Shown one piece after another: positions 39,130 through 51,108 of a stretch of 64,000 nucleotides of DNA. Origin of the DNA: Obrimoposthia wandeli (lineage: Eukaryota); the NCBI GenBank assembly GCA_977020255.1, contig CDROCS010002834.1, positions 434,001 through 498,000 on the forward strand, given 5' to 3'. A model generated the notes under the pieces. That model was not told the origin of the DNA. It worked only from the letters and a program-made list of their open reading frames with translations, and did not search any database. A program made the position numbers and the translations under genes. Within the stretch, counting starts at the first letter, position 1. The number at the start of each line of letters is the position of its first letter.

Positions 39130-40173
39130 ATGAATAAATTCACCTTAGCGACTCTTGTTGCACTCGTTCCTCTTTATACTCACGCCGCAAATTTCAATAC
39201 CATCTCAAGCTTCGGTGACAGTCTGTCCGATATCGGCAACAAACATATGATCACCGTCGAGATGAGCAATAAAACTTCAGGAAAAATTGGCATTCGTGCC
39301 TCAGAACCTAATTTCAACGGCCACTTCAGCAATGGGCCAGTCTGGACCGAATATCTGGCCAGTTTTCTTGCAATGCCAGCGCCAACCCGCGCTCATGGCA
39401 AAATCGAGAGCAAAGTAATTCTTAAAAACCAAGACGACAAACTTGTAGCCTACCACTATAAAGATAAAGCCCTGTTAGGTACGAACTGGGCAGTCGGCGG
39501 TGCGATGTCTGGTCTGGGCAATTTTATCGATATTGATGCCACCAACGGCTTCACCGCCTCTTCAGGTCTTGATGTTCTGGCAAACAGCGGCCAGCAAATT
39601 AAACAACGCATTGCCAACAAAGGCCAGTTCAGTGGCAGCGAGCTGGTCAGCTATATGAGTGGGACCAACAATCTGTGGTTCACTCTGTTCGGCGATCTCA
39701 ATCAAACCGGTGACAAAGCGGCATCCTATGCCCTTGCGGACGTGAAAGCCTTAATTGATGCTGGCTCAAAACAGATCTTAGCCGCAAACATTCCAAATTT
39801 TGTTGATGCACCATGGTTTGCAGGCAAACAGGACAAAACGACCCCGTTTATCCAGTCACACAACCAAGCGTTAAAAACAGGGTTAAAAAAACTGGCAGCA
39901 ACTCATCCTGATATCGACATTTTCTATTTTGATACTTTTGCCGTGTTTAATAAGGTTATTGATAATGTGAACAATCATGGTCAGTACCGTGATGTCGATC
40001 TGGGTGTCACCATCACCAACGTGACCGATGAAGCATATAGCTATGCTACTGGGGCAGTTATCGCCCAGCCAAACCATAACCTATTCTGGGATGGACTTCA
40101 TCCGACAACTGCAATGCACAAAATTATCGCTAAGCATGCCGCAGACCTCATCGAAACCGGACTGCCATTATGA
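39130..40173 (+). CDS. Secreted SGNH/GDSL esterase
   Basis: Signal peptide [19 protein letters not shown]. Block I FGDSLSD, FSNGPVW, block II WAVGGA, block III SGTNN, block V FWDGLHPT. Confidence 0.9.
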
Positions 40174-42272
40174 TCTCACTTAAATCCATACGCCATCAAA
40201 TCATCATCGGCGCAGCAAGCTGCCTTTTAATCTCGCTCGTCGCGGTATTGCTTGTCGGCCTAAAATACTCCAACCAGCTTGAAGGGATGGTGTACAACAA
40301 AACGCATGCCTTTGCCGAGCAAGAACAAACCCAACGGCTGGAAGATACCAGTAAATACCGTTCAGAGCAGATCCAAAACCAGTTATCTGTAGCGATGAAT
40401 TCTGTTGAAGCTCTGGCCAGTGTGATATCTGGAATGGCAAATAACGATGACGGCCAAACCAAACTCAGCCGTGAAGACCTTTCACTGGTGGTACGCGATC
40501 TGCTGGCGGGCAACCAGAAGTTTCTAGGGGCCTATATCGCTTTCGAACCCAATGCTTGGGATGGAAAAGATGCGCTTTACGAAGCTATCGACGGCAAAGG
40601 CCAGTTCAACGTGTATTGGACCCGCGGTAGCGACAACCAACTGAAGCCCTCATCGGTCGATTCCGATCGATTTTATATCCAAGATAAAACCAAAATAGGG
40701 ACCCGTGTCAGTGAATGGTACCTCTGTCCGATTGAGACTGGCCGCAGCTGCCTGATCGACCCGTGGGCATACAATGTTCAGGGCAAACAGGTGTTAATGG
40801 CCAACCTTGTCACCCCGATTAAAGCCAATGGCCGCACCATCGGCATGATAGGTATCGATTTATCGGTAAACTTTATCAATGAGTTGGCACTAAGGCTAAA
40901 ACAAAATCAATTTGGTCAAAACTCCCACGTCAGCATTATCACCTACCGCGGTGTTGTTGCAGGTGATACCGATCCGAGCTCTCCACTTGGTGACGTATTG
41001 TCAGACTGGAACCAGCGCAAATCTCAATTTCAAGCCGGCAAGCAGTTGTGGAACTCTACTGATGAATTCTCCAGCCTGGTGACCCCCATTAAGGTAGGCA
41101 ACACCAACACCCCATGGATGTTATGGATTGCGATTCCTAAAGCCGATCTGCTAGAAGACATCAATGCCTTACAAAAAGAGTTAAAGACGTCGTTCGGTGA
41201 TTTCCTTAACGCCCAATTAATAGCGGGCCTGTTAATTTCTGTCTTAGCACTCGCCATGCTCTACATATTGGCTAAACGTATTTCCACCCCAATTCAGCAA
41301 GTGGTGAACATTGTTCAACAGCTCGGCCGAGCCGGTGGCGATCTGACCTCCCGCTTGGATGTAACGAGAAAAGATGAAACTGGCGCTCTGATGAACGGCC
41401 TTAACATTCTGATGGCCTCGTTGCAGAGTATGATCCGCGATATCGCTGGTTCAGTCGACCATTTAAAACTGTCGGCAAATCGTTCTGCCAGTATTGCTGA
41501 AGCATCGCATCAAGATGTACAACAGCAACGTCAAGAACTGGAACAAGTTGCCACCGCCATTAATGAAATGGCCTCTGCGGCAAGCGAAGTGGCCAGCAAT
41601 GTGGCTAACACAGCCAACTCGGTGGAAGAGGTAAATCAGTCCATTACGCGTTGCGGTGATGTGGTCAATGACAGCGCCAGTATAATCAACAAGTTAGGCG
41701 AAGAAATGGAGCGTTCCTCTTCGACAATTATTGAACTAGAAACTCAGAGCCACCAGATCAGCAGTATTCTTGAGGTGATCCGTAGCATTTCAGATCAAAC
41801 CAACTTACTGGCCTTAAATGCTGCGATTGAAGCGGCACGGGCGGGTGAGCATGGTCGTGGATTTGCGGTTGTCGCTGACGAAGTCCGTCAGTTAGCATCC
41901 AAAACCCAAAACTCCACTGAAGAAATTCAGCAGATGATCAACCAGTTCCAAAATCAAATTAAGCTGACAGTAGAGACTATTGCAACTGGCAGAACCTTTA
42001 CACATAACAGTATAGAAAGCAGCAAAACGGCAGTCTTGGAGTTAGAGTCGGTAGTCGCTGCCACAGCAACCATTCAAGAAATGATGTGCCAAATAGCCAC
42101 AGCTTCAGAAGAGCAACATCAGGTGACTGAAGATATTAATCGCAATATCAATGCGATTACCGATATCACCATCAAAGCCGCCCAAGGGGCAGAGACATCA
42201 AACCAAGAAGCTCAAGGGATGTTGAAGCAAACCAGTGAGGTTGAAGATAAGCTAAATAAATTTAAATATTAG
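40170..42272 (+). CDS. Methyl-accepting chemotaxis protein with a periplasmic dCache domain
   Basis: TM1, ~310-aa periplasmic domain (FNVYWTR, EWYLCP, CLIDP, GIDLSV), TM2, [39 protein letters not shown] overlap with the esterase stop. Confidence 0.95.
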
Positions 42273-42967: not shown

Positions 42968-43870
42968 TCACATTCCTTCACCCTTTAGCTCTTGCTGACA
43001 CATTAGCTCTTGCTGGCATAAGATAAAAAAAGCATGTGCTTGTGGTGAAATATGGCGATCTAACAATCGAAAAATACCAATTTCCCGCTCAACGACAGGG
43101 TCTATCAATGGGATCCACACCAACTCTTTTTCATTGGTCGGAAAAGCCAATTTAGGCAAGGTGGTTATACCTATACCCAATTCTAATACTGAAAATAGCG
43201 AGGTAATATTTTCAACCGAATACAAAGCACTTTCTGCCAATACCCGCGCAGGTGTCGGTGCCAATAATGTGCAGGTACCATTTTTTATAAAGGGATAGGC
43301 TTCAAGCTGCTGCCACTTCAGTCCATTTTTAAATGTGGCTAACGGATGATCGGATAAACACACTACGCCTAATGGATCTGAAATTAAGGGCGTGAAATCA
43401 ATACGACTATCATTAATATGCAAGCAATTCCCCAGCGCAAGATCAACCTCACCAGCGAGCAGCCGTAACTCAACACCAGCCGCATTATCATCAATTAATG
43501 ACACTTCAACTTGCGGGTGACACGCCGTAAAAGCCGCCAACACTTTCGGGATTAGCTTGGCTGCAACGGAAGGCACACTACCAATACGCACTTGCCCTAA
43601 CTGCCCTGCTGCGGCGGCACTCAGATCACACGTTAAACTCTGATAATGATTTAAGAACTGCCGAATTTTAGGTAAACATATTGCGCCAAACGGAGTGAGT
43701 TTTACTTTATGCCCCGTTTCAAACAATGTTTGCCCCAGAATTTTCTCGAGTTCTTTCACTGCCGTCGATAAAGCAGCTTGAGAGCGGTTGGCCTTGCTGG
43801 AGGCTGCACGAAACCCGCCTTCATCCACCACCAGTACAAAATATTTTAACTGCTGCAGCTTAATATCCAT
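42968..43870 (-). CDS. LysR family transcriptional regulator (CynR/AlsR-like), divergent from the catabolic operon
   Basis: N-terminal HTH FRAASSKANRSQAALSTAVKELE, LTPFG, LLAGEVDLAL. Confidence 0.93.
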   Translation of the reverse strand: MDIKLQQLKYFVLVVDEGGFRAASSKANRSQAALSTAVKELEKILGQTLFETGHKVKLTPFGAICLPKIRQFLNHYQSLTCDLSAAAAGQLGQVRIGSVPSVAAKLIPKVLAAFTACHPQVEVSLIDDNAAGVELRLLAGEVDLALGNCLHINDSRIDFTPLISDPLGVVCLSDHPLATFKNGLKWQQLEAYPFIKNGTCTLLAPTPARVLAESALYSVENITSLFSVLELGIGITTLPKLAFPTNEKELVWIPLIDPVVEREIGIFRLLDRHISPQAHAFFILCQQELMCQQELKGEGM

Positions 43871-43929
43871 GTCTTAACGCATCCTTTTTTCACCCGTTTG
43901 TGAGCAACCGAGCATCAACCCTTTCCCTA

Positions 43930-43950
43930 TTGATAAATAAAACTTATCAA
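43930..43950. promoter_or_regulatory. LysR recognition site (T-N11-A)
   Basis: Perfect inverted repeat TTGATAA-N7-TTATCAA containing T-N11-A in the divergent LysR/RidA intergenic region. Confidence 0.72.
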
Positions 43951-44038
43951 TTGTCAAAAATAAAGCGTTAGATTTATCACTATTCTTTGCGCATAATTTA
44001 ACCACACCGAAACATACTCGCAACATAACGGATTAACT

Positions 44039-44431
44039 ATGTCAGCCCAAGCCGCTAAAAAACCAGTAAAAACAGAGCTTTTCGCATCTAAAGCACCCTT
44101 AGAGTGGGCTGTCGTGAATAACGGTACATTGTATACAGCACAAATCCCAATTGATCAGCAAGGTATGGTTGTTGAAGGGGGTATTGAAGCACAAACACGC
44201 CAAACCATGAATAACTTGATTCATACCCTTGAATGCGCAGGCGTTTCTACCGATGCGGTATTACAAGTGCTGATCTATGTTACCGACCGCAGCTATCTTG
44301 CAACCGTCAATCAAGTTTACGCAGAATACTTCAACGCCCCTTTCCCTAACCGTGCAGCCGTTGTTGTAGCAGGTTTAGCGCGTGAAGAAATGCTGGTTGA
44401 GCTTGTGGTTTACGCTGCCGTCGAATCATAA
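44039..44431 (+). CDS. RidA/YjgF/YER057c family imine deaminase
   Basis: LYTAQIP, IEAQTRQTMNNL, VNQVYAEYF...PNRA (conserved Arg), MLVEL. Confidence 0.9.
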   Translation: MSAQAAKKPVKTELFASKAPLEWAVVNNGTLYTAQIPIDQQGMVVEGGIEAQTRQTMNNLIHTLECAGVSTDAVLQVLIYVTDRSYLATVNQVYAEYFNAPFPNRAAVVVAGLAREEMLVELVVYAAVES

Positions 44432-44473: not shown

Positions 44474-45922
44474 ATGACATTTGAAGCAGAAAAAGCCCTC
44501 TACATTGCTGGTGAATGGCAATCAGGTATCTCTACTGTAGCTAACATCAACCCTTCAGATATCTCTCAGCAATTAGGCAATTTTGCACAAGCAAGCCAAC
44601 AGCAAGTGCAACAGGCAATTGATGCGGCTAAAACAGCGCAACCTGAATGGGAAAAAACCCCGTTAGAACACAAGCAAAAAGTACTGCAAGCAATCGGTGA
44701 TGAGCTTATTACCCGTTGTGATGAACTAGGCACATTGCTCTCAAGCGAAGAAGGCAAACCGTTTGCCGAAGGCCGGGGTGAAATCTACCGTGCAGGTCAA
44801 TTCTTCCAATACTACGCGGCTGAAGTATTGCGCCAAATGGGTGACCTAGCCCAATCGACTCGCCCAGGGGTATCGGTAGAAGTGAGCCGCGAAGCCGTCG
44901 GCGTTGTCGCGATTATCTCTCCTTGGAATTTCCCCACCGCAACAGCGGCATGGAAAATTGCCCCTGCATTGGCCTTTGGTAACAGTGTTATCTGGAAACC
45001 TGCCAACCTTACCCCAGCAAGTGCCGTGGCATTAACTGAAATCATTCATCGCCAAGGTTTACCTGCCGGTACATTCAACTTGGTACTCGGTAGCGGTTCT
45101 GAAGTGGGTAATACCCTGATTAATTCAGACCAAATCAATGCCGTTAGCTTCACAGGTTCAGTCGATACAGGTCGAAAAATCGCAACCGCAACAGCCCCTA
45201 ATTTTGTTCGTTGTCAATTAGAGATGGGCAGTAAAAATGCCTTAGTCATCGCTGATGATGCCGATATTCACATTGCCGTTGAAGCCACCATTATGGGGTC
45301 ATTCTCGGGTGCAGGTCAGAAATGTACCGCTTCTTCGCGCTTAGTCGTACTCGATAGCATTCACGATGCGTACGTTGATGCCTTAATCAAACGCATGAGC
45401 ACATTAAAGATTGGTCACGCGCTGCAAGATGGCGTGTTCATGGGGCCGGTTGTGGATGATAAACAACTCGCATCAAACATGTCGTGGATAGATAAAGCCC
45501 GTGGGCATGGCGCTGAGCTAGCCTTTGGTGGCGAGCAACTTAACCTAGAACACGAAGGTTACTACATGTCGCCGACCTTGTTCTTGAACACGAAAAACAG
45601 TTGGGATGTAAACCAAGAAGAAGTCTTCGCTCCGATGGCGAGTGTCATTCGCGTCAACGATCTTGAGGAAGCAATCGCCACCGTCAACGATACGCGCTTT
45701 GGTTTAACGAGCGGCATCATCACGCAAAGCCTACGCTCCAGCGCATTGTTCAAGCAACAAGCACAAACAGGCTGTGTCATGGTTAACCTACCAACAGCAG
45801 GTACCGATTATCACGTGCCATTTGGTGGCCGTAAACAATCAAGCTTTGGTCCCCGTGAACAAGGTCAGTACGCGAAAGAGTTCTACACCATTGTAAAAAC
45901 CGCTTACCAGCGCCCTTACTAA
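44474..45922 (+). CDS. NAD(P)+ aldehyde dehydrogenase (2-oxoglutarate semialdehyde dehydrogenase-like)
   Basis: ISPWNFP, WKPA, FTGS, LEMGSKN (catalytic Glu), GQKCTAS (catalytic Cys), EEVFAP, PFGGRK.SSFG.REQG. Confidence 0.9.
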   Translation: MTFEAEKALYIAGEWQSGISTVANINPSDISQQLGNFAQASQQQVQQAIDAAKTAQPEWEKTPLEHKQKVLQAIGDELITRCDELGTLLSSEEGKPFAEGRGEIYRAGQFFQYYAAEVLRQMGDLAQSTRPGVSVEVSREAVGVVAIISPWNFPTATAAWKIAPALAFGNSVIWKPANLTPASAVALTEIIHRQGLPAGTFNLVLGSGSEVGNTLINSDQINAVSFTGSVDTGRKIATATAPNFVRCQLEMGSKNALVIADDADIHIAVEATIMGSFSGAGQKCTASSRLVVLDSIHDAYVDALIKRMSTLKIGHALQDGVFMGPVVDDKQLASNMSWIDKARGHGAELAFGGEQLNLEHEGYYMSPTLFLNTKNSWDVNQEEVFAPMASVIRVNDLEEAIATVNDTRFGLTSGIITQSLRSSALFKQQAQTGCVMVNLPTAGTDYHVPFGGRKQSSFGPREQGQYAKEFYTIVKTAYQRPY

Positions 45923-45931
45923 GGAACGTCT

Positions 45932-46921
45932 ATGTATCAGGATCGTATCATTATTGATGGTTTGCAGTATTGCAATTGGGATCGCACGTATTTTGAAACA
46001 CTGAAAGCGAGCGGCATTACCGCTGTTCATGCCACGGTGGTTTATCACGAAACAGCCCGCGAAACCTTAACGCGCTTTGCACAATGGAACCTTCGCTTTG
46101 AGCACAACAGTGATCTCATTATGCCGATTATGAGCATGGACGATGTCACCACAGCCAAAGCAACTGGGCGAGTCGGTATTTTCCTTGGTGCACAAAATTG
46201 CTCACCCATTGATGATGAGATCGGTCTGATCAGTGTGATGCGCCAACAAGGGTTGCTGATCATGCAACTGACTTATAACAACCAGAGTCTATTAGCGACT
46301 GGGTGTTATGAGCAAGAAGATGCTGGTGTGACGCGTTTTGGTAAACAAGCCATTGCCGAGATGAATCGGGTGGGAATGATTGTGGATATGTCTCACAGTG
46401 CTGAGCGTTCAACGCTAGAAGCTATCGACATTTCTTCTCGCCCGATTTGTATCAGCCATGCAAACCCGAATTTCGCGCACCCCGCGTTACGGAATAAATC
46501 GAATGAAGTCATTCAATCATTAGCCAATCGCGGCGGTTTGATTGGATTCAGTTTGTATCCGTTCCACTTGCCCAATAGCAGCCAATGTACCTTAGAAACA
46601 TTTTGCCAAATGGTCGCCGATAGCGCCGAATTAATTGGCGTAGATCACCTCGCTATCGGCAGTGATTTATGCCTGAACCAACCACAAGAAGTGCTGGAGT
46701 GGATGCGAAATGGGCGTTGGTCGAAAGCGATGGATTATGGTGAGGGTTCATCAAGTAATTCAGGCTGGCCAGATGCACTACCGTGGTTTTGTGACAGCAA
46801 GGGAATGGAAAACATTTACCACGGCTTGATAAGGCAAGGTTTCAGCGAAACTGAAAGCAGCCAAGTAATGGGAGGAAACTGGTTCAACTTCTTACAGGAA
46901 GGCTTAACACCTGTCAGCTAA
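45932..46921 (+). CDS. Membrane-dipeptidase (M19)-like amidohydrolase with an altered metal site
   Basis: QLTYN.Q, GVTRFGK.AIAEMNRVGMIVDMSH, SHAN, RNKS, IGSD, MGGNW. The N-terminal HxD is replaced by LQY. Confidence 0.85.
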   Translation: MYQDRIIIDGLQYCNWDRTYFETLKASGITAVHATVVYHETARETLTRFAQWNLRFEHNSDLIMPIMSMDDVTTAKATGRVGIFLGAQNCSPIDDEIGLISVMRQQGLLIMQLTYNNQSLLATGCYEQEDAGVTRFGKQAIAEMNRVGMIVDMSHSAERSTLEAIDISSRPICISHANPNFAHPALRNKSNEVIQSLANRGGLIGFSLYPFHLPNSSQCTLETFCQMVADSAELIGVDHLAIGSDLCLNQPQEVLEWMRNGRWSKAMDYGEGSSSNSGWPDALPWFCDSKGMENIYHGLIRQGFSETESSQVMGGNWFNFLQEGLTPVS

Positions 46922-47018: not shown

Positions 47019-48581
47019 ATGTCCGACTTTACCAATGCAGTAAAAGCAGAACATATTCCAACACCACAATCGACGGCTGAAAAGCTTGGGCTTGATAATC
47101 CTGCCTTATGGATGAGCGGTGGCTTTATTGCCCTTTTTGTCATATTTGCATTGTACGACAATGCCTTACTCTCAGACGTGGTCAATACAGGCTTTTCTTG
47201 GTCGGTGAAAATCTTTGGTCCTTATTGGCAGGTATTGTTATTACTTACTTTTTTGATCAGCCTCGTTTTAGCCGTAGGCCATACAGGACACGTTCGCTTA
47301 GGCGCGCTTGATAAGCCTGAAATAGATGGTTTCCGTTGGATGGCGATCATTCTATGTACCCTACTAGCAGGAGGCGGGGTATTTTGGGCTGCCGCCGAGC
47401 CTATCGCTCACTATATGAGTCCGCCCCCATTGTTCGGGGCCCAAGAAAGCCCTCAACAAAATGCAATTAATGCCTTATCACAATCATTTATGCACTGGGG
47501 CTTCCTCGCATGGGCCATTCTTGGCAGCTTAACCTCAATTGTATTAATGCATCTGCACTACGATAAAGGATTACCACTGCAGCCGCGTACTTTGCTCTAC
47601 CCCATTCTAGGTAAACGCGCATTAACAGGTTTAACCGGTGCAACGATTGATGCTTGTTGCATTATTGCTGTCGCCGCGGGAACAATCGGCCCAATCGGAT
47701 TTCTAGGGTTACAAATCAGCTTTGCATTAAATGCGCTATTTGATATTCCTGACGGCTTTACCACCCAATTTATCGTGATCCTTTGTGCGATTGCGATTTA
47801 TACCTTATCAGCCTTAAGCGGTCTAAATCGCGGGATTCAAATTCTGAGTCGCTATAACATCATTTTAGCGGTTGGTTTAATGGCCTACATCATGATTTTT
47901 GGCCCCACAAGTTTCATTGTAAATAGCTACATTCAAGGTGTCGGCAGCATGATCGACAACTTCATTCCAATGGCAACCTACCGCGGTGATGAAGGTTGGC
48001 TAAGCTGGTGGACAGTATTCTTCTGGGGCTGGTTCATCGGTTATGGCCCTATGATGGCGATCTTTATTGCCCGTATTTCGCGTGGTCGTACTATCCGTGA
48101 ATTAGTGATGGCGGTGAGTGTCATCGCGCCGATTATTACTTGCTTCTGGTTTACTGTTGTCGGCGGTTCGGGCGTTGCCTTTGAAATGGCCGATCCGGGT
48201 TCTGTCAGTAAAGCTTTCGAAGGTTTCAACCTACCTGCCGCACTACTTGCTATTACTCAACAGCTGCCGTTTCCATTAATTGTCTCGATTCTGTTTCTTA
48301 TCCTAACAACGATCTTCATTGTCACAACAGGAGACTCAATGACCTACACCATCAGTGTGGTGATCAGTGGCGACACCGAACCGAATGCTGCTATTCGCAT
48401 ATTTTGGGGAGTAATGATGGGAGTAACAGCAATAATCCTAATCTCCTTAGGCTCAGGTGGCGTCTCGGCATTGCAGTCCTTTATCGTCATCACTGCTGTC
48501 CCCGTTTCTCTTATCTTGTTGCCATCGCTGTGGAATGCCCCAAAAATGGCCAGAATAATGGCAAAGGAACAAGGTTTATAA
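47019..48581 (+). CDS. BCCT (betaine/carnitine/choline) family transporter
   Basis: 12 TMs, AAAEP, FMHWGFLAW, GIQILS..N, WWTVFFWGWFIGYGP, ARISRGRTIRE. Confidence 0.93.
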   Translation: MSDFTNAVKAEHIPTPQSTAEKLGLDNPALWMSGGFIALFVIFALYDNALLSDVVNTGFSWSVKIFGPYWQVLLLLTFLISLVLAVGHTGHVRLGALDKPEIDGFRWMAIILCTLLAGGGVFWAAAEPIAHYMSPPPLFGAQESPQQNAINALSQSFMHWGFLAWAILGSLTSIVLMHLHYDKGLPLQPRTLLYPILGKRALTGLTGATIDACCIIAVAAGTIGPIGFLGLQISFALNALFDIPDGFTTQFIVILCAIAIYTLSALSGLNRGIQILSRYNIILAVGLMAYIMIFGPTSFIVNSYIQGVGSMIDNFIPMATYRGDEGWLSWWTVFFWGWFIGYGPMMAIFIARISRGRTIRELVMAVSVIAPIITCFWFTVVGGSGVAFEMADPGSVSKAFEGFNLPAALLAITQQLPFPLIVSILFLILTTIFIVTTGDSMTYTISVVISGDTEPNAAIRIFWGVMMGVTAIILISLGSGGVSALQSFIVITAVPVSLILLPSLWNAPKMARIMAKEQGL

Positions 48582-48664: not shown

Positions 48665-50377
48665 ATGGTGAGCAATATGGATGCACATCCTTGTACTGGA
48701 ACCCAATCACAATTACGCCACCCCGATACGGTAATGGCGCCAGAGCGATTGGGCGCAATGCATCAAAGTCGTATCAGTTTTGTACGTAGCTTGATCCGTC
48801 GTATGGCTAATCAGAAATGGTCCGTATCTCAAGTTCAATGGGATATTTCCGAACAAGGGTTTGGGATTGCGGTATACCGCTTAGATACCCCCAACCATCA
48901 TTACCATTTGGTGATCTTTTCTGATGCTATTGCCGATGAAGAACGTAACGATCGCGTGATCGCTGAAAAGTGGGATGTAACGTTTGCACTGGTACAAGGT
49001 GATATTGATAAAGCATTTTTAAGCCAATTACAAAACAATGTGCCACTCCAAGAAGCTGGCCGTAACTCAAGCCAAGTATTGGTGTTGGCTCGCGCCAATA
49101 AAAGTGTGCGGGTCTTTGATCACTTAGTCACTTCACTAGCAAAAGGACAACAACCTGATTCGCAAGTCTTAGCCGATGTCGGTTATATTCTTCGCACGAC
49201 AGCGGTTTATGGTAACGGTAAATTTGGCATTGCAGATTTTGAGATTTTAGATGAGAACCCAGACTTCAACCTCTCTTTCAGCGCTCAAATGTGCGCAGTC
49301 TATATGTTGCGCCAATTCAGTCTTGATTGGGTGCACTTCTTGGCCAAACAGCAAGGGGGCGCTAAAGCAATCCATCTTGCTCGTCCATTACAGCGTTATT
49401 TAGGCGTTGGTAATGCAACAGGACTCGGCATGGCACCCTACCTCATTCGTCATCCGCGTATTGTCGATCAATGGTTATCGGAACGTGAAAAAGCCCTTGC
49501 AGCAGTATCAGCCTGCACCATCACACCTGCTGCCAATCAGGCTATTTGCCCGTTATTGCACCGTGCCATTGCGCACCTAACGCAAGTTGTCACCATTAAC
49601 GAACACCAACAAAAATTGAACGCTGAAGCGATCAGTGACCTTCACAACATAATGGCTAACATCACTGCTGCTCAACAAAAACAGTGGCCATGGAAACAGC
49701 TCATTAAAGACAACCAGCAATACTGTAACGAAGCCCAAGAAATAACTATTTCGTGCATCATGGAGCTGTATCCAGAATTAGTTGATAGTCACGAAAACAA
49801 CATGAATGCTGATGAAACACAGGCATTAACACCCGGCATCACGGTTCAACACCTAACGGATGTATTGAAAGAACGCTACCGCTGGGCGCTAGATATCGAC
49901 TTTGCTTCTGCCGAAAACAGCTATTGGTTTTGGTACCGCTCTGAAGACAAAGAAGAACCAAGAATGGGAATTCGTGGTCAAGAACCCGGTGAAGATCGCG
50001 AGTTAGCCCTCGATATTGCACGCCAGATTTATCGTTTACATGCTGCATTGGCAGCCGTTGAACCGTCACAAACCTTGGCTGAGTTTCTATTACATCAGCC
50101 ACAATATCGCTCTATTGCGCGTCGCGCATGGACACTGGGGCATTGCCATATGGGTGATATTCAAATGAATATCTTAGACCAACATGCCTTGCCGATGCAC
50201 CTATTACGTTGCAAGTTAGCCATGTTCGGTGCCACAAAGTTTGACCCACGTTCAGACCGCTGGGTGCGAGTCACCTTCTTCCAAGGCGCTCCTTTAACGG
50301 ACGAAATTCACGACCAAGAGTGGTTATTCCCATTATTACCGACTAACACTGAATCAACATCGGAGGCGCAAACATGA
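48665..50377 (+). CDS. Conserved hypothetical 570-aa soluble protein, probable enzyme of the operon
   Basis: Long intact ORF with enzyme-like motifs (RANKSVR, LRTTAVYGNGKFG, GVGNATGLGMAPYL, FDPRSDRW). ATGA-coupled to the next gene. No family recognised. Confidence 0.85.
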   Translation: MVSNMDAHPCTGTQSQLRHPDTVMAPERLGAMHQSRISFVRSLIRRMANQKWSVSQVQWDISEQGFGIAVYRLDTPNHHYHLVIFSDAIADEERNDRVIAEKWDVTFALVQGDIDKAFLSQLQNNVPLQEAGRNSSQVLVLARANKSVRVFDHLVTSLAKGQQPDSQVLADVGYILRTTAVYGNGKFGIADFEILDENPDFNLSFSAQMCAVYMLRQFSLDWVHFLAKQQGGAKAIHLARPLQRYLGVGNATGLGMAPYLIRHPRIVDQWLSEREKALAAVSACTITPAANQAICPLLHRAIAHLTQVVTINEHQQKLNAEAISDLHNIMANITAAQQKQWPWKQLIKDNQQYCNEAQEITISCIMELYPELVDSHENNMNADETQALTPGITVQHLTDVLKERYRWALDIDFASAENSYWFWYRSEDKEEPRMGIRGQEPGEDRELALDIARQIYRLHAALAAVEPSQTLAEFLLHQPQYRSIARRAWTLGHCHMGDIQMNILDQHALPMHLLRCKLAMFGATKFDPRSDRWVRVTFFQGAPLTDEIHDQEWLFPLLPTNTESTSEAQT

Positions 50378-51108
50378 TGCAGGTATCACACAACGAATTG
50401 GTCGTACTCAGTGCCAAAGCCTTCGATGGATTACGCCGACATTGCGGTGAATCAGACATGATTGCCAATATGGTGGCTGATTTAGAAATGGCCGGATTAA
50501 ATGGGGTTCAACATTTTGTGAATGCCCTCGCCTTCATGAAAAATGAAAACGATGGCCCTGTACAAGTCGATGCATTTACAGGCTCGCAGCTAACGGCGAA
50601 TCTACACGGTTGCAGTATTTTATGCCACTTACCCACCTTGCTGGATTACACCGTTGAAAAGCTGGTCGACCAACCCACAATTACCCTACACATTGAGCAA
50701 TGCCATAACCGCTGGCTAGCCTTTGGTGAACTGGTCAAACTGGCGGGTAAAGGCTTATCGGTAAAAGCACAGTGGTATAACGGCAGTGATCCTAAGCATG
50801 TGGTGTATGTATTGAATGCGGGGTGCATCTTGCCCGATATTTACCTTTCAAAAGCAGACCCAACAATGAATAAGCACTCTTTGACGATAGAAATCAGCAA
50901 AACGCCTATTCCACAACCTCGACTAACAGCACACCATCAGCATATTTCATCTGCCACCCTCGCCGCGGCGAAACGACATGCTTGGCAACATGGTGTGACG
51001 GTGAATAAATCTGACTGGCTCAAGATCAAGCAAACGGCAGAAGGTATTTTAGTTGAATCCAGTGATGCTTCACGTTTGGGCGCTGGCGAATCTCAGCCCT
51101 GCGAATAA
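50374..51108 (+). CDS. DUF3726-like protein, probably a degenerate Ldh_2/DpkA-type fold
   Basis: N-terminus VSHNEL...KAF.G...A.MVA.LE..G and C-terminus AW.HGV.V...DW..I resemble the ends of Ldh_2 oxidoreductases (recognised by eye). Confidence 0.6.
   Translation: MMQVSHNELVVLSAKAFDGLRRHCGESDMIANMVADLEMAGLNGVQHFVNALAFMKNENDGPVQVDAFTGSQLTANLHGCSILCHLPTLLDYTVEKLVDQPTITLHIEQCHNRWLAFGELVKLAGKGLSVKAQWYNGSDPKHVVYVLNAGCILPDIYLSKADPTMNKHSLTIEISKTPIPQPRLTAHHQHISSATLAAAKRHAWQHGVTVNKSDWLKIKQTAEGILVESSDASRLGAGESQPCE

Follow-up and report, generated by a model that had tools for sequence, protein, structure and literature searches.

Few small nitrogen compounds are as abundant in marine phytoplankton and invertebrates as homarine (N-methylpicolinate). 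The bacterial means of consuming it is the hom operon, homABCDER, which was described in March 2026 (Ferrer-Gonzalez et al., Nat Microbiol; PMC13236597). In Ruegeria pomeroyi DSS-3, homA-homB-homC-homD-homR correspond to SPO3188-3192 and transposon mutants in homB, homC, homD or homR lose growth on homarine. In Cobetia sp. OBi1, the homarine-induced cluster comprises a regulator, a glycine-betaine-type transporter (homT) located inside the operon and five catabolic genes. The tested HomB genes are SPO3189 in the former and ACFLL8_11500 in the latter; the operon also encodes a peptidase (HomC) and an aldehyde dehydrogenase (HomD), and homE is an auxiliary gene whose presence varies (PMC13236597). 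Here, we analyzed a window of 64,000 nucleotides (nt) from an assembly deposited under the name Obrimoposthia wandeli (GCA_977020255.1, contig CDROCS010002834.1, positions 434,001 to 498,000 of the forward strand), in which a first-pass annotation made from the sequence alone had singled out a protein of 570 amino acids (aa) with enzyme-like motifs. The present analysis indicates that, almost certainly, this protein is HomB, the larger member of an enzyme made of two proteins and encoded by a homarine operon.

The survey published with the operon provides the terms of comparison: homA (about 700 nt) and homB (about 1,700 nt) are adjacent in 97.7% of 11,755 genomes, and homC and homD were required to be co-located within 10 kb. 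Where the auxiliary gene homE is present, half of the genomes have it beside homA, like Cobetia, and the other half beside homD; 93% of gammaproteobacterial operons have homE and 94% of alphaproteobacterial operons are devoid of it (PMC13236597). A second related system, described in the same paper, is the trigonelline pathway of Acinetobacter, where a two-protein system, TgnA/TgnB, is proposed to open an N-methylpyridinium carboxylate ring. Its likeness to the hom pathway extends to a downstream aldehyde dehydrogenase and to a hydrolase releasing a C1 unit.

The gene cluster of the window and its relatives

Seven genes make up the cluster of the window (Table 1): a LysR-type regulator on the minus strand and then, on the plus strand, genes encoding a RidA protein, an aldehyde dehydrogenase, an M19 peptidase, a BCCT transporter, the 570-aa protein and a DUF3726 protein. 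Its resemblance to the operons of R. pomeroyi and Cobetia concerns: (i) gene lengths (1,713 nt and an adjacent 735 nt versus about 1,700 and 700 nt for homB and homA), (ii) the peptidase and aldehyde dehydrogenase genes, found within a few kb, (iii) the regulator, divergent from the RidA-aldehyde dehydrogenase pair, (iv) the betaine-type transporter, which lies inside the operon as the fourth of the seven genes, with the aldehyde dehydrogenase on the regulator side, as in Cobetia, (v) the auxiliary gene, found in one of its two reported positions, and (vi) the taxonomic range, which includes Vibrionales. The difference from Cobetia lies in homE, which adjoins homD in the window (the arrangement of Vibrionaceae) and not homA. 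It is on this match of gene sizes, order and variable parts, together with the taxonomy, that the assignment to HomB is based; homology with the published operons is deduced from architecture and not from the sequences of the tested genes. The nearest HomB is that of Photobacterium profundum (94% identity at homB). By this assignment, what was a "hypothetical protein" of P. profundum type becomes a pathway member. Taken as a whole, it is highly probable that the 570-aa protein is the HomB of a homarine operon in a P. profundum-like bacterium and that HomAB takes the first, ring-opening step. Since the family received its name and its genetic link with homarine catabolism in March 2026, this identity is already known; the ring-opening chemistry is still unsolved. 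The ectoine, dimethylsulfoniopropionate, carnitine, creatine and hydroxyproline-betaine pathways were also weighed against the gene content and discarded, as the enzymes that define them are missing.

The neighborhoods of the 80 named genome loci closest to the HomB of the window were compared. These loci belong to Vibrionaceae, Shewanella, Psychrobacter, Halomonadaceae, Marinobacter, Pseudomonas, Oceanospirillales, some Alphaproteobacteria, Poseidonibacter, Brevibacillus and Chloroflexota. An M19 peptidase is found near HomB in 75 of them, an aldehyde dehydrogenase in 65, a BCCT transporter in 61, a LysR regulator in 59 and RidA in 50. DUF3726 was detected in 68 loci and a divergent copy in seven others, so that the adjacency holds in 75 of the 80. 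De novo clustering of the neighboring open reading frames (ORFs) revealed no other gene family in more than 12 of these loci and, in particular, no conserved flavin reductase or oxygenase. The distribution of RidA mirrors the one reported for homE: it adjoins DUF3726 in the loci of Halomonadaceae, Marinobacter and Pseudomonas, adjoins the aldehyde dehydrogenase in those of Vibrionaceae and Psychrobacter, and is not present in the alphaproteobacterial hom loci of this set. In nine split loci, it lies outermost on the homD-homC-homT arm, past the BCCT gene. Furthermore, two Pseudomonas genomes carry a single DUF3726 gene each, at the hom locus, and none of 14 control genomes carries any. PA5397, from the Pseudomonas dgc operon, considered as a possible DUF3726 protein, was not confirmed as such and was dropped.

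Additional genes flank some of the hom loci (Table 1): (i) a formate dehydrogenase alpha gene (TIGR01591, 760 bits) beside seven loci (once directly after a fused homBA), (ii) a full-length canonical Ldh_2 gene beside seven loci (twice directly after homA), and (iii) GcvT/DmdA-like demethylase genes beside seven loci. These accessory genes hint at steps of formate release, imine reduction and N-demethylation. Distant HomB relatives (L009, L010 and L011; about 30-33% identical) occur in other gene contexts, with neighbors encoding ABC transporters, creatinase/M24, ornithine cyclodeaminase, a D-amino-acid-oxidase-type flavoprotein, GST and a 320-aa Ldh_2-like partner. Substrates of the wider HomB family may include other N-heterocyclic or N-methylated compounds.

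That more than one substrate is suggested for the wider family, and that growth of the organism of the window on homarine is itself predicted, could mean that this cluster degrades another N-methylated compound imported by the BCCT transporter, such as trigonelline or another pyridinium or cyclic betaine. We consider this very improbable: the HomB of the window lies among the 80 closest loci, nearly all of which have the canonical hom gene set, and, within Vibrionales, a hom-positive Vibrio isolate grows on homarine and homB transcripts track homarine at sea (PMC13236597).

Table 1. Features of the homarine-type cluster (positions in the window) and hom-related features of other loci and contigs
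Feature	Position	Strand	Basis
homR, divergent LysR-type regulator	42968..43870	-	Pfam HTH_1 + LysR_substrate
Candidate LysR operator between homR and homE: perfect 8-bp inverted repeat, 7-bp spacer	43929..43951	.	Sequence reading; putative function
homE, RidA/L-PSP imine/enamine deaminase, auxiliary gene	44039..44431	+	Pfam Ribonuc_L-PSP, E 3.8e-23
homD, NAD(P)+ aldehyde dehydrogenase	44474..45922	+	Pfam Aldedh, E 1.5e-150
homC, M19 (dehydropeptidase-type) metallo-amidohydrolase	45932..46921	+	Pfam Peptidase_M19, E 1.5e-68
homT, BCCT betaine-type transporter	47019..48581	+	Pfam BCCT, E 3.5e-156
homB, 570-aa protein, large subunit of the presumed HomAB enzyme	48665..50377	+	ORF; operon signature
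homA, 244-aa DUF3726 protein, 735 nt	50374..51108	+	Pfam DUF3726, E 8.3e-13
Accessory genes of other hom loci	L035:7135-9378; L050/L051:3378-5594; L054:8533-9615; L061:11504-12532; L051:11496-12842		
Other hom contigs of the assembly (loci L095-L112)	C4150, C410, C2751, C3535, C3501, C4528, C4705, C1089, C253		

Sequence conservation and fold of HomB

The homB ORF runs from ATG to TGA exactly over the annotated interval, and its stop codon overlaps the ATG of the downstream DUF3726 ORF by four bases. The first-pass annotation had stressed a dense set of Arg/Gly/Asn motifs (including RANKSVR, GVGNATGLGM and FDPRSDRW). The five motifs that it quoted are all present, begin at residues 93, 143, 177, 247 and 526, and fall on columns that are invariant or conserved at >90% in an alignment of 101 family members reaching down to about 28-30% identity. 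In this alignment, G67, L158, R216, G247, G249 and G522 are invariant, and the near-invariant columns include R97, W103, D104, R133, R143, N145, S147, R149, Y174, R177, N184, G185, G188, N250, G255, H263 and E275. About 84 columns are conserved at ≥80%, including 14 Arg as well as Gly-rich loops. No Cys is conserved at ≥40% and H263 is the only near-invariant His; HomB is therefore devoid of any Fe-S or classical 2-His metal signature. Together with the lack of any Pfam or NCBIfam family, this agrees with the earlier statement that no Rossmann, Fe-S or pyridoxal phosphate signature is recognizable. The claim that the protein has no transmembrane segment also stood, as no membrane helix is indicated (top 19-residue Kyte-Doolittle window, 1.25). 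In the predicted structure, the strand/Gly-rich-loop/helix at positions 247-262 and the many Arg residues would suit a phosphate or carboxylate ligand, and carboxylate binding by the Arg-rich motifs, as initially proposed, fits a carboxylate substrate such as homarine.

A word search that scored the 8,000 best candidates yielded at least 5,281 HomB homologues at E ≤ 0.001, and an exhaustive search gave 1,287 representatives at 50% identity. Such numbers of homologues and clusters put this ORF far beyond chance. The 120 best homologues listed come chiefly from Vibrionaceae, Shewanella and Moritella, and all are named "hypothetical" or "uncharacterized" protein in their source. A PDB sequence search with the single HomB sequence found nothing; with the family profile, the only PDB match was P450 BM3 (E 0.01-0.02), over a helical stretch, and was treated as chance. 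The earlier view of a protein without recognizable family thus holds for Pfam, NCBIfam and PDB, but the family now has a name, HomB, through the operon signature published in 2026. As HomB has been characterized genetically and not biochemically, the match to a characterized enzyme family that the first-pass annotation had named as the finding that would speak against it exists by half.

The AlphaFold2 model obtained from the 101-sequence alignment is confident (mean predicted local distance difference test score, pLDDT, 94.8; predicted TM-score 0.93) and predicts three parts: an alpha/beta domain at the N-terminus, a helical domain in the center and another alpha/beta part at the C-terminus. 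Foldseek found no PDB match at E ≤ 0.001 for the whole model. The best hit of an exhaustive VIA search reached a Z of 7.0 on a helical hairpin, and the re-examined Foldseek candidates behaved likewise. In the ESM Atlas, feature-based and shape-based searches retrieved nothing outside HomB's own family. Residues 1-284, which hold most of the conserved motifs, were also folded alone (pLDDT 92.6): Foldseek gave nothing significant for this part, and weak rows of bilin reductases at E 0.3 or worse were rejected. GNAT acetyltransferases and urate oxidase were rejected too, with VIA Z values up to 5.5, below the noise level. The GNAT fold (Hat1, Mpr1) gives the best structural alignments of the N-terminal alpha/beta domain, but these cover about 100 residues with a root-mean-square deviation of 4-5 Å and a Z of 4-5.5, compared with 7-8 for what VIA calls a "common arrangement", and provide no evidence of kinship. 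The central domain resembles generic helical bundles. Overall, HomB looks like an enzyme subunit whose predicted fold has no match in PDB by these searches, which cover the whole chain and residues 1-284; to this extent, the suggestion of a novel enzyme fold in the first-pass annotation is supported by a confident model.

The absence of a recognizable cofactor or catalytic motif and the generic helical bundle of the central domain might also be expected from a non-catalytic HomB that would serve the other hom enzymes as a scaffold, chaperone or sensor. This is extremely unlikely in our opinion, as the many conserved columns, with their Arg residues and Gly-rich loops, are typical of a ligand pocket, homB is a core gene required for growth on homarine (PMC13236597) and the ring-opening step would be left without an enzyme.

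HomA and the proposed opening of the homarine ring

The only Pfam match of HomA is DUF3726. However, when a HomA profile built from 36 sequences was searched against PDB (hmmsearch), it retrieved the Ldh_2 proteins YiaK (1nxu, E 1.2e-8) and 1z2i (E 2.4e-7) and, more weakly, sulfolactate dehydrogenase (E 7.8e-5) and DpkA (E 1e-3). Comparison with seven canonical Ldh_2 proteins by hhalign gave a probability of 97.2% (E 4e-11). HomA is therefore homologous, at the profile level, to the Ldh_2 family (YiaK, AllD, ComC, DpkA; type-2 malate/L-lactate dehydrogenases), the match spanning its N-terminal ~135 and C-terminal ~30 positions. It differs by its size (244 aa versus ~335 aa), by the absence of the central ~100 residues and by a five-residue deletion that removes the SHG segment, where Asn or Asp is found instead; in Ldh_2 enzymes such as YiaK and DpkA, this segment carries the catalytic His. 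Together, the homology and these two losses suggest that HomA is a degenerate dehydrogenase domain that has been retained as a subunit, probably with a structural or substrate-positioning role rather than that of a flavin supplier. This description of HomA as a shortened Ldh_2 remnant devoid of the catalytic His motif is new. HomB was also considered as a supplier of the missing Ldh_2 part and rejected (hhalign probability of 1%).

The first-pass annotation had noticed that the 570-aa protein is ATGA-coupled to a DUF3726-like protein of 244 aa and had predicted that the two form a complex. The overlap and the DUF3726 assignment were both retrieved, and a functional tie is now supported by the adjacency in the compared loci, by gene fusions and by the ten copies of the assembly, all with a neighboring DUF3726; the complex as such stays a prediction. 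HomB-type proteins of 790-960 aa are common, and the ones tested carry DUF3726 as their additional C-terminal part; these proteins are therefore natural fusions of the two ORFs of the window. Such common HomB-HomA fusions are reported here for the first time and, as single chains, would be convenient for expressing the complex. Examples include P0048, P0121, P0139, P0199 and P0221, as well as L100, L101/L102 and L104 in the assembly (contigs C2751, C3535 and C3501), which are low in G+C and Poseidonibacter-like.

How would these two proteins open the ring? The 2026 paper hypothesizes a TgnA/TgnB-like two-component flavin system, in which HomA would provide reduced flavin and HomB would activate O2 and cleave the pyridine (PMC13236597). 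This is argued from the TgnA/TgnB analogy, from motifs for binding flavin adenine dinucleotide (FAD) in HomA and from a high-confidence AlphaFold heterodimer of HomA and HomB. Moreover, homarine is an isomer of trigonelline, and C7H9NO5, one of the reported intermediates, equals homarine + O2 + H2O. However, by its profile HomA is a truncated member of an NAD(P)H-dehydrogenase family and not a flavin reductase, and HomB has no flavoprotein match in Pfam, NCBIfam or PDB and no structural match at Z ≥ 8. Pfam, NCBIfam and structure searches found no recognizable flavin reductase or flavin-dependent oxygenase domain in either protein, and the absence of a conserved flavin or oxygenase partner near the cluster is another new result of this work. 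The likeness to TgnA/TgnB thus concerns the pathway, whereas the proteins differ: HomA is Ldh_2-derived, the fold of HomB is unmatched and no kinship with flavin reductases or oxygenases is detectable. As the evidence points to an Ldh_2 remnant, the HomA partner of HomB is not the flavin protein used as comparison. We therefore regard a two-component flavin system as unlikely, while giving it some weight.

M19 enzymes are a dehydropeptidase family, which hydrolyzes N-acyl dehydroamino acids. Isotope labeling showed that carbon and nitrogen flow from homarine to N-methylglutamate with retention of the N-methyl group, and intermediates were reported by their formulae, C7H9NO5, C6H9NO4 and C6H9NO3 (PMC13236597). 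Mapping the atoms of homarine onto N-methylglutamate implies that ring carbon C6 is lost and that C5 becomes a carboxylate. By arithmetic, homarine + O2 + 2[H] gives C7H9NO4, for which N-formyl-N-methyl dehydroglutamate semialdehyde is a candidate; C7H9NO5 is then the corresponding acid, C6H9NO4 the deformylated acid and C6H9NO3 the deformylated aldehyde. In a grid crossing formylated/deformylated and aldehyde/acid forms of N-methyl-dehydroglutamate, the reported formulae thereby account for all but one of the four positions.

This grid suggests the following route. HomAB would catalyze the first, committing step on homarine: the substrate carboxylate would be held in the conserved Arg cluster of HomB, and the N-methylpyridinium ring would be activated and opened between C5 and C6, most likely with consumption of a reductant (NAD(P)H) and O2, to give N-formyl-N-methyl dehydroglutamate semialdehyde. 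HomD would then oxidize the aldehyde, a role assigned from the formula grid and because its nearest NCBIfam families, both below their cut-offs, are GucD and 2,5-dioxovalerate dehydrogenase (alpha-ketoglutarate-semialdehyde type). HomC would remove the formyl group as formate, in line with the activity of M19 enzymes on N-acyl dehydroamino acids. The resulting N-methyl enamine/imine may have two fates: (i) reduction to N-methylglutamate or (ii) in organisms with RidA but no N-methylglutamate dehydrogenase, such as Vibrionaceae, hydrolysis by HomE (RidA) to 2-oxoglutarate or its semialdehyde and methylamine. With these steps assigned to HomD, HomC and HomE, ring activation and C5-C6 cleavage are left to HomAB. 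Furthermore, since no other gene family, flavin reductase or oxygenase is conserved nearby, there is no other catalytic candidate for ring opening.

Ldh_2 members include reductases of cyclic imines and N-methyl imines (such as DpkA), and enzymes of the amidohydrolase superfamily are able to open N-heterocycles. HomAB, with its subunit of Ldh_2 origin, could therefore act late, as an isomerase or an imine/ene reductase converting a deformylated dehydro intermediate to N-methylglutamate, the ring being opened hydrolytically by the M19 enzyme or non-enzymatically after some other activation. This scenario is improbable, since HomA has lost both the SHG His and the central region, full-length Ldh_2 genes beside several hom clusters look as if this activity were supplied separately, and no core gene would be left to break the C5-C6 bond.

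As to how the pathway ends, SoxD and SoxG homologues are absent from four genomes that carry the hom operon with RidA, namely P. profundum (ATCC BAA-1252), Aliivibrio sp. EL58, Vibrio bivalvicida and Psychrobacter sp. GP33 (loci L013, L017, L029 and L024), and Halomonas salifodinae has one SoxD/SoxG set. These four genomes (three Vibrionaceae and one Psychrobacter) thus seem devoid of N-methylglutamate dehydrogenase (NMGDH) and of heterotetrameric sarcosine oxidase; their lack of subunits of the sarcosine-oxidase/NMGDH type is a new observation. The pathway of Vibrionaceae therefore probably ends with 2-oxoglutarate and methylamine and not through N-methylglutamate dehydrogenase. This agrees with the published Vibrio isolate that grows on homarine but lacks mgd, an observation left unexplained in that paper (PMC13236597). 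We tentatively propose, as a possibility that falls somewhat short of even chances, that HomAB represents a new class of N-methylpyridinium ring-opening enzymes, made of an unmatched fold and a dehydrogenase remnant and working without flavin or classical metal, for example on a hydride-reduced dihydropyridine with O2, and that the pathway of Vibrionaceae ends via RidA in 2-oxoglutarate, methylamine and formate.

Several points weigh against the assignment and the route proposed here. The identity of HomB relies on the operon signature and taxonomy and not on a direct comparison with SPO3189 and ACFLL8_11500, and growth of the Photobacterium of the window on homarine is a prediction. The biochemistry of HomAB is likewise predicted, both in the paper and in this work, and binding of NAD(P)H, flavin or a metal by HomB is putative. 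The intermediates are known as formulae alone, so that cyclic isomers are possible, and the stoichiometry would also allow a redox-neutral opening (homarine + 2 H2O = N-formyl-N-methylglutamate semialdehyde). Finally, the FAD-binding motifs attributed to HomA in the paper were not reproduced here. The remaining interest of the system lies in the unmatched fold of HomB, in the ring-opening chemistry and in the signs that HomA is an Ldh_2 remnant and not a flavin protein, and the biochemistry of HomAB could reveal new enzymology.

hom genes in the assembly and other features of the window

The source assembly (1.35 Gb in 6,912 contigs) is a mixture that includes various hom-bearing bacteria. At least ten HomB genes of differing bacterial origin were found in it, and the contigs that carry them have 28-47% G+C. 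All of the ten copies directly adjoin one DUF3726 region, three of them as fusions, and nine are accompanied by at least part of the hom gene set. This number and diversity of HomB genes would be in keeping with a source rich in homarine, for example a marine invertebrate or an algal holobiont.

In the window, genes for an SGNH esterase and a dCache/HAMP chemoreceptor are located at 39130-42272, about 1 kb beyond homR and greB/greA. Chemotaxis genes are induced by homarine (PMC13236597), and a link of this chemoreceptor to the homarine cluster is conceivable.

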